Assembly (NCBI RefSeq): GCF_963921235.1
Contig: NC_086107.1
Location: 46,934,001 to 46,998,000 of the forward strand
Direction of reading: 5' to 3'
Length of the DNA stretch: 64,000 bases
Origin: Mobula hypostoma
Lineage: Eukaryota
Notes under the pieces: model-generated
Seen by the model: only the letters and a program-made list of their open reading frames with translations
Database searches by the model: none
Told to the model about the DNA's origin: nothing
Part shown: piece by piece, positions 50,665-53,800 of the stretch
Numbering within the stretch: position 1 is the first letter of the stretch
Layout of the letters: each line of letters starts with the position of its first letter
Made by a program: the position numbers and the translations under genes

Positions 50665-50802
50665 TCATTTATCTGCCTGTACAAAAGAGGCAAAGGTTCC
50701 ATCCCTTTGTTCCAAGAGTCTGCTGGGAGCGTCATATTCCAAAATAATTCCTCTCTTCATCACAATCACCAGGTCTGCATTCAAAATGGTATGCACACGA
50801 TG
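50665..50802 (-). CDS. ABCC8: Terminal exon, SUR1/SUR2B type: [45 protein letters not shown]
   Basis: ggttttccag|CATCGTGTG, phase 0, TGA at 50665-50667. Confidence 0.92.
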
Positions 50803-53800
50803 CTGGAAAACCAAAGTATTAATTAGTCTGATTGATTGATAGACCAGATATTATTTTAAAAAAATAGGAAACTCAGTTAGCCACTCAGCACTGAAAAACA
50901 AAAACAGCCCATGTTAGTTTTGAAAGCAAAAGATTTCTGCTTTTATAATGATGACACACCGTTCCCATACAAACCCAGTAAGTCATCTTTGTGACCATCT
51001 TTAAATATTGGTCTTCACTAAAAAGGCAAATGTGCTGTCCTTGCTCAGCAAATTGGAAACGGAATCGTTCTCTGCTACTGTGCCCTCAGACAGCACTATA
51101 ATTTGATCCGCATCCAGAATTAGAGAAACGCGATGCTACAAAGGAAAAGGCGAAAGAAATCTTTCACATAGGTACACAAAAAAACCTAAGATACGCCAAG
51201 TCAAACTATTCCCATGATATTCACTGCCTTAATTTATTGAATTGGCCTTGTCCTTTGTTCCATTGTAATATATAATAATACCACTGGATAGTATCATTTC
51301 CCAAATTTAGTCTACCCCATTTCATAGTCATAGTCATACTTTATTGATCCCGGGGGAAACTAGTTTTCGTTACAGTTGCACCATACAAAACATCACATTT
51401 TCAACCCTAAACATGTTAAAATCTGAACTCAAAGACCACTATTTTTAGGATTGAGCTCCTTTCTCACTTTTCTGCACTGAACCCTATTTTCTATGTGCTC
51501 TCACCCCAACTCCTCAAACCTTTCTAAATACTTTGACCATAAGACAAAGGAGCAGAATTAGGCCCATTGAGTCTGCCCTGCCATTTGGTCATGGCTGATT
51601 TATTTTCCCTCTTAACCCCATTCTTATGAATTCTCTGTGTAACTTTTGTTGCCCTCATTAATTAAGTCTGTTTTAAATTTGCACAGTGTCTTAATCTCTA
51701 TAGCTTTCTGTGGCAATGAATTATATAGATTCATCACCCTCTGATTCCCAGACTCTCCCACTATTGGAAACATTCCTTCTAATTCGATTCTATCTAGTTC
51801 TTTCAATATTCAGTAGGTTTTAATGAGATCTCTCTCATTTTTATAAACTCCAGCAAGTACAGGCCAGGAGCTTCTCATATGTTAACTCTTCATGCCTCAG
51901 CTTGGTGGAATCCTTGCCAAAGAAGTAGGCCTGTCTTCCTTCCCCAGTCACCACTCTGCAATCCTGTTCTCTGAGGTTCCAGCTCTTGGGTCCCTGGAGA
52001 CCCCATCTTCCTCTCACCCTAATTTCCCGTCTCCTCTGACATTACCAATCCCTTTCCCCCCCTCTGATCCCAGCTGTCATCTGTGCTGGGTCTTCACCAA
52101 CCCCTCCGACCTTCCCCTCTCTGTCCTCAATAAGGGCCTCACCTTTGTCCCCCTGCGCACACACCTCAGTGAGTTCTGCAAGCGCCATGATGCTTCTTCT
52201 ACCGCCTCCATCTCCAGGCCTACTTCTTTGGTAAGGACTTTCTACCCCGCACCAACGACCCCTTCTTCTGTCTTCAAGTCTCCTCCTCTTCCTGGACACC
52301 CTGCTCTGGATCTTTTCATTGATAATGGATATCAATCGTTTCGACTTCACCACTCTTCTCTCCAATTCCAACCTCACTCCTTCTGAACAAACTGCTCTCC
52401 ACACCCTCTGCAGTAATCCTAATCCTAACCCTCACCATCAAACCTGCAGATAAGGGGGGTGCTGTAGGAGTCTGGCAGACAGACCTCTAGCTTGCTGAGG
52501 CCTGGTGACAACTGTCAGACACTTCCTGTTACTTACCCCTCGAACATAGTCATAGTCATAGTCATACTTTATTGATCCCGGGGGAAATTGGTTTTCGTTA
52601 GTTGCACCATAAATAATAAATAGTAATAGAACTAGTAATACTACTATTAGTAAATAGTAATAGTCATAGAAATAATAAATAGTAATAGAATAGTAATAGA
52701 AAAATAGTAATAAATAGTTAAATAGTAATATGTAAATTATGCCAGTAAATTATGAAACAAGTCCAGGACCAGTCTATCGGCTCAGGGTGTCTGACCCTCC
52801 AAGGGAGGAGTTGTAAAGTTTGATGGCCACAGGCAGGAATGACTTCCTATGACGCTCTGTGTTGCATCTCGGTGGAATGAGTCTCTGGCTGAATGTACTC
52901 CTGTGCCCACCCAGTACATTATGTAGTGGATGGGAGACATTGACCAAGATGGCATGCAACTTAGACAGCATCCCACTTAGAACAGGACCCCACTAAGGAG
53001 CACCAGGCCATTATAGTGTCCCACACCATCACTGACCTTATTAGCTCACTGAACTTATATCTGTATACCTCGACTCAGTTTTATCCCCCCCACCGTTCAG
53101 TCCCTTCTCACTTACATCCATGGCACTTCACACACCCTTGACCTTTTCAATGATTTCAAGTTCCCTGGCCCCAATCATCTTATTTTCACTATGGATGTCC
53201 GGTCTCTGTACATCGCCATCCCCCACCAGGAAAGCTCTCTTGTTTCTTTCTGGACACCAGGCCCAACCACTTCCCCTCCACCACCACTCTCCTCCGTCTG
53301 GCAGAACTTGTCCTTACTCTTCATAATTTCTCCTTTAGCTCCTGCCACCTCCTTCAGACAAAAGGTGTAGCCATGGGCAGTCGTATGGATCCTGGTTATG
53401 GCTGACTCTTTGTCAGCTATGTGGACCAGTCTGTGTTCCAAGCCTACAATGGTATCACTCACCAACTTTCCCTACGCTGCATCGACAATGCATTGGCACT
53501 GCTTACTGCACCCATGCTGAGCTCGTTGACTTCCATCAACTTTGCCTTCAACTTCCACCCTGCCCTCAAATTTACCTTGTCTATTTCCGACACTTCCCTC
53601 TCCTTTCTCAAACTCTCTATCTATCTCCGGAGAGAGCTTATCTACTGATGTCTATTATAAACCCACTGACTCTCACAACTACCTGGACTATACCTCTTCC
53701 CACCCTGATACTTGTAAAAACACCATCCCCTTCTCTCAATTCCTCTATCTTCTCTGCATCTGCTCTCAAGATGAGGCTTTTCATTCATCAATGCTGCTCT

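Follow-up and report, generated by a model that had tools for sequence, protein, structure and literature searches.

The stretch of DNA analyzed here, referred to below as the window, comprises 64 kb of the genome of Mobula hypostoma (NC_086107.1, positions 46,934,001-46,998,000) and contains the 3' end of ABCC8, the gene for the sulfonylurea receptor SUR1, followed by KCNJ11, the gene for Kir6.2. All numbering is that of the window, and ABCC8 is read from its minus strand. A previous reading of the sequence (the original prediction) had proposed that this ABCC8 carries, upstream of its usual last exon (exon B), a second last exon of the type found in SUR2A (exon A). We found that exon A is intact, conserved among cartilaginous fishes and under purifying selection, and that it is already used in gene models from two further species.

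Terminal exons of ABCC8

Of the full SUR1 architecture (TMD0-L0-TMD1-NBD1-TMD2-NBD2, approximately 1580 aa), only the part encoded by the last five exons of ABCC8 lies inside the window. Exon N-3 (63099-63203, minus strand, 35 residues) was located by tblastx and tblastn comparison with SUR1 of Callorhinchus, Amia and turtle, and its edges are approximate. Its residues CTDS...VVK follow the SUR1 pattern, for which the SUR2 counterpart is CTDD...NMVK. Exon N-2 (57815-57949, minus strand), also found by tblastx and tblastn, encodes the Walker B and D-loop region of the second nucleotide-binding domain (NBD2) and is 89% identical to turtle SUR1. Exon N-1 (56971-57033, minus strand) has 63 nucleotides (nt) encoding 21 residues, ends with TVVTIA, is in phase 0 at both ends and is followed by the donor GCT/gtaagt (the slash marks the exon edge). 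Because N-1 ends in phase 0 at gtaagt, either exon A or exon B can be joined to it in frame.

As originally described, the TVVTIA exon is followed by a pair of exons that both start in phase 0. The coding part of exon A (51001-51135, minus strand) consists of 44 codons and a TAA stop codon, begins with the H-loop histidine of NBD2 and encodes an alternative SUR1 tail. Exon B (50665-50802, minus strand) has 45 codons and a TGA stop codon and encodes the canonical SUR1/SUR2B-type tail, grouping with the B exons of ABCC8 and ABCC9 in the tree described below. The two exons encode identical residues at 18 of 44 positions. Each is preceded by a polypyrimidine tract and AG, again as predicted: the acceptor sequence is ccttttcctttgtag for exon A (acceptor region 51136-51165, minus strand, from reading of the sequence and a six-species alignment) and ggttttccag for exon B. 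Approximately 25 nt 5' of the exon A acceptor, a TGAAAGAT motif (51157-51165, minus strand) is kept in all six of the cartilaginous fishes compared, including the chimaera.

Conservation of exon A among cartilaginous fishes

The layout of two exons after N-1 is the same in the five other chondrichthyans examined as in the window. Exon A is intact, with 44 codons and a stop codon, in all six species (Mobula, Hypanus, Leucoraja, Carcharodon, Scyliorhinus and Callorhinchus), and the pyrimidine-AG acceptor before it is conserved in each. These species span a chimaera, sharks, a skate and rays; five of them are elasmobranchs, three of which are batoids. Amino acid (aa) identity to exon A of the window is 95% for Hypanus (L001:816-950), 86% for the skate Leucoraja (L010:6634-6768), the great white shark Carcharodon (L008:1485-1619) and the shark Scyliorhinus (L009:3177-3311), and 70% for the chimaera Callorhinchus (L003:6037-6171). 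The great white shark and chimaera exons are 61% identical to each other, so that the exon originally claimed to be intact is kept in five further cartilaginous fishes at 61-95% aa identity.

Pairwise ratios of nonsynonymous to synonymous substitution (dN/dS) are 0.11-0.31 for exon A and 0.07-0.17 for exon B. As the intron around exon A is already 93% identical between the window and Hypanus, this pair says little, and it is the shark and chimaera comparisons that bear the argument. Exon A is under purifying selection, and its distribution indicates that it was already present in the chondrichthyan ancestor.

Proposed splicing of exon A

Two candidate donors follow the stop codon of exon A, at the positions originally given. 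For the first, TTT/GTATGG, a non-coding exon stretch of 30 nt after the stop codon is followed by GT at 50970-50969 (50965-51000, minus strand), so that the exon would end at 50971 and measure 165 nt. The second, ACG/GTGTGT (50954-50964, minus strand), would give an exon end at 50960 and a length of 176 nt. The two differ in conservation: TTT/GTATGG is present in all five elasmobranchs, while at the 176-nt donor GT is found in the three batoids only and both sharks have CT. The original prediction had allowed either donor; both exist, but only the 165-nt one is conserved throughout the elasmobranchs. The length of 176 nt is also what we take to be that of the mammalian SUR2A cassette, a figure not found in the literature searched.

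The sequence beyond the stop codon is conserved as well. In a comparison of sharks with batoids, the first 40 nt past it are conserved; the exon A stop and the start of exon B are 198-201 nt apart in 5/5 elasmobranchs. Within the interval between the exons (50803-50959, minus strand), an ACTAAC motif resembling a branch point is conserved, and a pyrimidine-CAG element is also present. Taken as a whole, the non-coding stretch at 50803-51000 (minus strand) shows an unusual degree of conservation across sharks and rays (window, L001, L008, L009 and L010). The pyrimidine tract leading to CAG within it lies approximately 85 nt 5' of the true exon B acceptor, and this conserved stretch may serve as a decoy acceptor or help to control splicing.

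Mammalian ABCC9 uses its upstream exon as a cassette. The conserved features favour a similar arrangement here, with a cassette of 165 nt, or possibly 176 nt in batoids, and with exon B becoming 3' untranslated region (UTR). In this model, exon A would be included through the acceptor at 51135 and a donor 30 or 41 nt beyond its stop codon. Inclusion would end translation within exon A and convert exon B into 3' UTR, whereas skipping would let the protein finish in exon B. Since the exon A stop codon would then lie 30-41 nt from the final junction (less than 50 nt), nonsense-mediated decay should not be triggered.

The best-surviving alternative, which we consider unlikely but by no means negligible, is that exon A is a true alternative terminal exon with a polyadenylation site of its own and is never joined to exon B. 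On its exon side (TTT), the conserved donor candidate is poor, an AATAAA sequence overlaps the exon A stop codon in Hypanus and Leucoraja, and the coding sequence (CDS) would end in exon A under either mode. However, AATAAA is absent from that place in the window and in the sharks. The preservation of the 40 nt after the stop codon, of GTATGG and of the 198-201 nt spacing across the shark-ray split also fits a spliced cassette followed by a regulated short intron.

Origin of exon A and its absence from bony vertebrates

The tail encoded by exon A was compared with tails of the SUR2A type (from one mammal, frogs, snakes, one bird and teleosts), with the B tails of both SUR1 and SUR2 and with ABCC9-like tails of invertebrates. 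The A and B tail exons are called A8 and B8 in ABCC8 and A9 and B9 in ABCC9. Mean identity is 51% between A8 and A9, 44% between A8 and B8, 50% between A8 and the invertebrate ABCC tails and 77% between B8 and B9. The estimate in the original prediction that exon A is about half identical to the SUR2A tail was thus accurate. We also considered whether A is the ancestral and B the derived form, on the grounds that A might be nearer to the invertebrate tails. This idea was dropped, as identities to those tails are 50% for A8, 44% for A9, 47% for B8 and 45% for B9, and BLOSUM scores even favour B.

Maximum likelihood trees of the exons were built from 45 columns, with the chondrichthyan ABCC9 A exon outside the sample. 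B8 and B9 form a clade with support of 100/100 on a long branch, A8 a clade with 97/88 and A9 a clade with 100/96. The best tree joins A8 to A9 with support of 69-73/77-80. Trees in which A8 was forced together with B8 were 19-20 log-likelihood units worse and were rejected by the approximately unbiased (AU) test (p-AU 0.011 and 0.0275), whereas uniting A8 with all of the B exons was not rejected (p 0.39-0.47). These results indicate that the B exon of ABCC8 did not give rise to exon A once SUR1 and SUR2 had split, and that the B form had become distinct earlier than this split. Because the grouping of A8 with B8 is rejected, the most parsimonious reading is that the A/B pair is older than the split and was inherited by both paralogues. 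This simplest history is favoured, not proven: the trees bear out the original proposal of a switch predating the duplication insofar as they reject derivation from exon B, while the weak union of A8 with A9 leaves the proposal itself short of proof.

A second route to the same distribution is the copying of exon A from the A exon of ABCC9, by gene conversion or exon transfer, in the chondrichthyan ancestor. A8 is nearer to A9 than to the B exons and is weakly grouped with it, and among the sampled taxa exon A of ABCC8 occurs only in Chondrichthyes. However, retention is much the likelier course, since a copy from another chromosome would have to be inserted exactly at the homologous intron and in the same phase. 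In addition, A8 falls outside the osteichthyan A9 clade (100/96) and does not carry its derived residues SSIL, LVF and ECD. We therefore regard such a transfer as improbable.

A third possibility is that exon A arose as a tandem duplicate of the ABCC8 B exon after the SUR1/SUR2 split and that its likeness to SUR2A is convergent. Tandem exon duplication is common and would keep phase and length, and the 18 residues shared by A and B are compatible with it, but the B8 + B9 clade, with its long branch, excludes A8, and the likelihood cost of uniting A8 with B8 makes such an origin very improbable. A protein of Crotalus adamanteus named ABCC8 (P0286) combines a SUR2A-type tail (...LVKTNK) with a body of the FSVGQRQ type and is probably a misnamed ABCC9.

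Exon A was also sought in bony vertebrates. The sample consisted of sturgeon, bowfin, zebrafish, spadefoot toad and sauropsids; coelacanth, lungfish and bichir stand outside it. No A-like exon was found in the last ABCC8 intron of sturgeon (1.46 kb), bowfin (1.24 kb), zebrafish (155 nt) or spadefoot toad (1.6 kb). Likewise, no A tail was seen in approximately 120 sauropsid ABCC8 models among the matches listed, whose ends are either B tails or intron read-through. A single weak match in Amia (E-value: 0.23), considered as a remnant A exon, contains a stop codon and was treated as a chance match. Exon A is missing from every bony vertebrate sampled and was most likely lost early in the bony vertebrates. 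The loss from mammalian ABCC8 in the original prediction is in fact older than mammals, as the exon is already wanting in sturgeon, bowfin, zebrafish, frog and sauropsids.

Exon A in public gene models and the literature

The A/B module is known from ABCC9, and exon A of chondrichthyan ABCC8 can already be seen in automatic annotations. Two unreviewed UniProt models of Callorhinchus milii ABCC8 (A0A4W3JDH8 and A0A4W3IME5) end in ...TVVTIA/PRVCLLLDADQ...KAHQ, that is, in the A tail; they emerged from a search with turtle SUR1 whose matches were dominated by sauropsids. For Carcharodon ABCC8, the CDS of the longest product at NCBI (1577 aa) terminates exactly on the exon A stop codon. Gene models of two other species thus splice exon A to the TVVTIA exon, in agreement with the original claim that the exon is real. 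The longest product is B-ended in Hypanus, Scyliorhinus, Leucoraja and the NCBI annotation of Callorhinchus. When N-2, N-1 and the A tails, combined in a profile, were compared with 5.8 billion proteins, SUR2A and SUR1-B fragments of many species were recovered, but no chondrichthyan ABCC8 fragment with an A tail. The matches to exon N-2 in a search of representative sequences were for the most part short fragments of genomic origin. In the literature searches, no paper describing exon A of ABCC8 was found.

Models of this kind could in principle have taken up a decaying or chance reading frame through protein similarity, with no translation in vivo. The evidence for exon A here comes from genomes and gene models, and in Callorhinchus a proline replaces the H-loop histidine. 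Against such an explanation, all six species keep the 44 codons, the stop codon and the acceptor, with dN/dS well under 1. Moreover, the comparison crosses the deepest living split of the chondrichthyans, between chimaera and elasmobranchs, a distance at which neutral sequence would be unalignable. We give the idea of a chance frame very little weight.

Gene identity and neighbouring genes

The original prediction identified the gene as ABCC8 rather than ABCC9, and this identification holds. KCNJ11 (41240-42382, minus strand; one coding exon, 380 aa) is found on the same strand, 8.3 kb downstream. Compared with chains in the PDB, its product scores 608 bits with Kir6.2 and 563 bits with Kir6.1. 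Its closest relatives are all annotated as KCNJ11, the nearest being that of Hypanus sabinus (97% identity), which points to a stingray relative as the source of the window, and in the tree it falls within the elasmobranch KCNJ11 clade. The next gene past KCNJ11 is a multi-exon gene (4680-24281, plus strand) resembling B7-H6/NCR3LG1, in which Pfam matches identify exons for one immunoglobulin (Ig) V-set domain and several C1-set domains. A comparable Ig gene adjoins KCNJ11 in Callorhinchus and Leucoraja, and NCR3LG1 (B7-H6) is presumably the neighbour of KCNJ11 at the human locus.

At the KCNJ11 loci of nine other vertebrates, an ABC gene with a product of 1572-1596 residues ends upstream of KCNJ11 in every case; the flank obtained for Narcine stops short of ABCC8. 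The annotated orthologue products (1572-1593 aa) have two ABC_membrane and two ABC_tran Pfam matches each, and SUR2 chains in the PDB are shorter (1545 aa). The Callorhinchus orthologue (P0510, a near-full-length UniProt model named ABCC8) scores 2551 bits with SUR1 versus 2276 with SUR2. The 101 body residues available from three exons of the window group with SUR1 (support 83/87), but a SUR2 placement is not rejected (p 0.385), as this stretch is too short and too conserved for SUR2 to be rejectable from these residues alone. On the basis of the neighbouring KCNJ11 and Ig genes and the full-length orthologue scores, the gene is ABCC8 (SUR1).

We considered the reverse assignment because the B tail scores slightly higher with SUR2B (61.5 bits) than with SUR1 (57.6 bits) in the PDB. 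That the gene is instead ABCC9 or a third SUR paralogue, exon A then being an ordinary SUR2A exon, can be discounted almost entirely: besides the unrejected SUR2 placement of the window residues, that score is the only point in its favour, while the adjacent gene is KCNJ11 instead of KCNJ8, the syntenic Callorhinchus protein prefers SUR1 by approximately 275 bits and bears the name ABCC8, the orthologues have 1572-1593 aa versus 1545 aa for the SUR2 chains, and the tail ends in ADK, not ADM.

Several further observations concern the neighbouring sequence. The KCNJ11 frame remains open for 25 codons 5' of the methionine that aligns with the start of Kir6.2, up to a GTG codon (41240-42457, minus strand), and shark KCNJ11 models range from 397 to 456 aa, which suggests that annotations disagree on the N-terminus. 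A second copy from Mustelus asterias ("KCNJ11-like", P0106) sits on a long branch among KCNJ11 of lobe-finned fishes and tetrapods, away from the sharks, which might reflect a divergent paralogue, a contaminant or an artefact of the tree. An open reading frame (ORF) for a reverse transcriptase of the long interspersed nuclear element (LINE) type lies inside the Ig gene (15605-17014), and fragments of LINE-type endonuclease/reverse transcriptase ORFs occur at 157-981, 28521-29456, 34038-35633 and 61619-62227, one of which falls in the ABCC8 intron that precedes exon N-2.

Predicted function and overall interpretation

The last 42 residues of SUR set how strongly MgADP opens ATP-sensitive potassium (K-ATP) channels, a property that distinguishes channels like those of beta cells from channels like those of the heart. 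Exchange of these residues between SUR1 and SUR2A is enough to switch how Kir6.2 channels are regulated by Mg-nucleotides (PMC6292810), and a segment of seven residues (1516-1522), midway along the SUR2A tail, is critical to what separates SUR2A from SUR2B (PMC10276813). By our own count from the offset of the PDB alignment, this segment takes in the SEG motif. It reads SEGTVAE in exon A and KRGIILE in exon B, compared with SEGILVE in SUR2A and KRGNILE in SUR2B. Since the tail sets Mg-nucleotide regulation and exon A has SEG where exon B has KRG, the A isoform, together with the Kir6.2 encoded next to it, is predicted to form a channel with a SUR1 body and a weaker, SUR2A-like MgADP relief of ATP block. 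By the same reasoning, its responses to channel openers may differ from those of the B isoform. Exon A thus probably lets cartilaginous fishes make a SUR1 subunit with a different energy-sensing tail.

We are fairly confident in the overall picture, in which the window holds the 3' end of ABCC8 and KCNJ11, and exon A, placed between the TVVTIA exon and exon B, is a further functional coding exon that is proposed to act as a cassette, most likely belongs to a pair older than the gene duplication and is predicted to confer SUR2A-like function. The following observations weigh against parts of it. First, the exon side of TTT/GTATGG (positions -3 to -1) makes a weak donor, and exon A may instead be terminal and carry its own poly(A) site. 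Second, the support that joins A8 to A9 in the best tree is weak, and placement of either A8 or A9 beside the B clade is not rejected (p 0.39-0.57). Third, A8 is as near to the invertebrate ABCC tails (50%) as to the SUR2A tails (51%), and a comparison that lacks the chondrichthyan ABCC9 A exon leaves room for transfer from ABCC9. Fourth, approximately half of the A tail positions differ from SUR2A, so that SUR2A-like behaviour is a prediction. Fifth, the models that use exon A in two species are automatic and may rest on RNA-seq or on protein alignment. Sixth, the first codon of exon A in Callorhinchus is CCT (L003:6037-6039), which encodes proline, while the other A and B exons compared have the H-loop histidine at this position; the Callorhinchus A isoform, if translated, would have an NBD2 without the catalytic histidine. 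Given the second and third points, it is chiefly its position, with a few residues in common, that earns exon A the label "SUR2A-type".

On balance, we lean slightly towards a broader history, in which the A/B switch predates the genome duplications that separated SUR1 and SUR2, cartilaginous fishes operate it in both genes and thereby have a fourth SUR isoform, and bony vertebrates rely on ABCC9 alone for the A form. If this is true, the fourth isoform would combine a SUR1 body, with its high-affinity sulfonylurea pharmacology, and an A tail giving "cardiac-type" low MgADP sensitivity in selected tissues. A two-tail switch retained in chondrichthyan ABCC8 would date the switch to before the SUR1/SUR2 split, and the single-tail SUR1 of bony vertebrates would be a secondary simplification. 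The locus is an evolutionary and biophysical lead and does not represent a new kind of system.

Comparison with known systems

The closest known arrangement is that of SUR2A and SUR2B in ABCC9 (exons 38 and 39 in mammals). As in the ABCC8 gene described here, the TVVTIA exon is followed by two exons in tandem, both in phase 0, each opens at the H-loop histidine and encodes the last 42-45 or so residues of NBD2, and the upstream exon has its own stop codon. In both genes the upstream exon follows the pattern HRVS...SEG...NLL...LVxTNK and the downstream exon HRVHTIL...KRG...FASFVxAD (PMC2883927). ABCC9 protein models with A-type tails were found in teleosts, frogs, snakes and one bird. Unlike this module, the one in the window lies in the paralogue ABCC8, which is B-only in mammals and in all bony vertebrates sampled. 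The A tail of ABCC8 has 44 residues versus 45 in SUR2A, with approximately 51% identity and a weak link in the tree, and the conserved donor of ABCC8 would give an exon of 165 nt versus the 176 nt that we assume for SUR2A.

Mammalian SUR1, known from cryo-electron microscopy structures of Kir6.2/SUR1 (e.g. 6BAA and 6C3O), has the orthologous body and a B tail, and its gene is likewise in tandem with KCNJ11. In contrast to the ray gene, ABCC8 of mammals and other bony vertebrates has a single terminal exon. The Callorhinchus models A0A4W3JDH8 and A0A4W3IME5 represent the orthologous gene with exon A; they are automatic predictions, and their first tail residue is Pro, not His.

The proposed isoform also has a laboratory counterpart in the tail-swap chimeras of SUR1 and SUR2A (Vedovato et al. 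2018, PMC6292810), in which a SUR1 body carries an A-type tail of 42 residues, as would be the case here. The original prediction of a SUR1 with an A tail and no mammalian counterpart therefore holds for natural proteins, while an engineered SUR1 with the SUR2A tail has already been studied. The chimeras are artificial and carry the mammalian SUR2A tail (PMC6292810), whereas the chondrichthyan A tail is natural and quite different in sequence. Set beside the engineered chimeras, a natural SUR1 with an A-type tail could show which residues of the tail are important.

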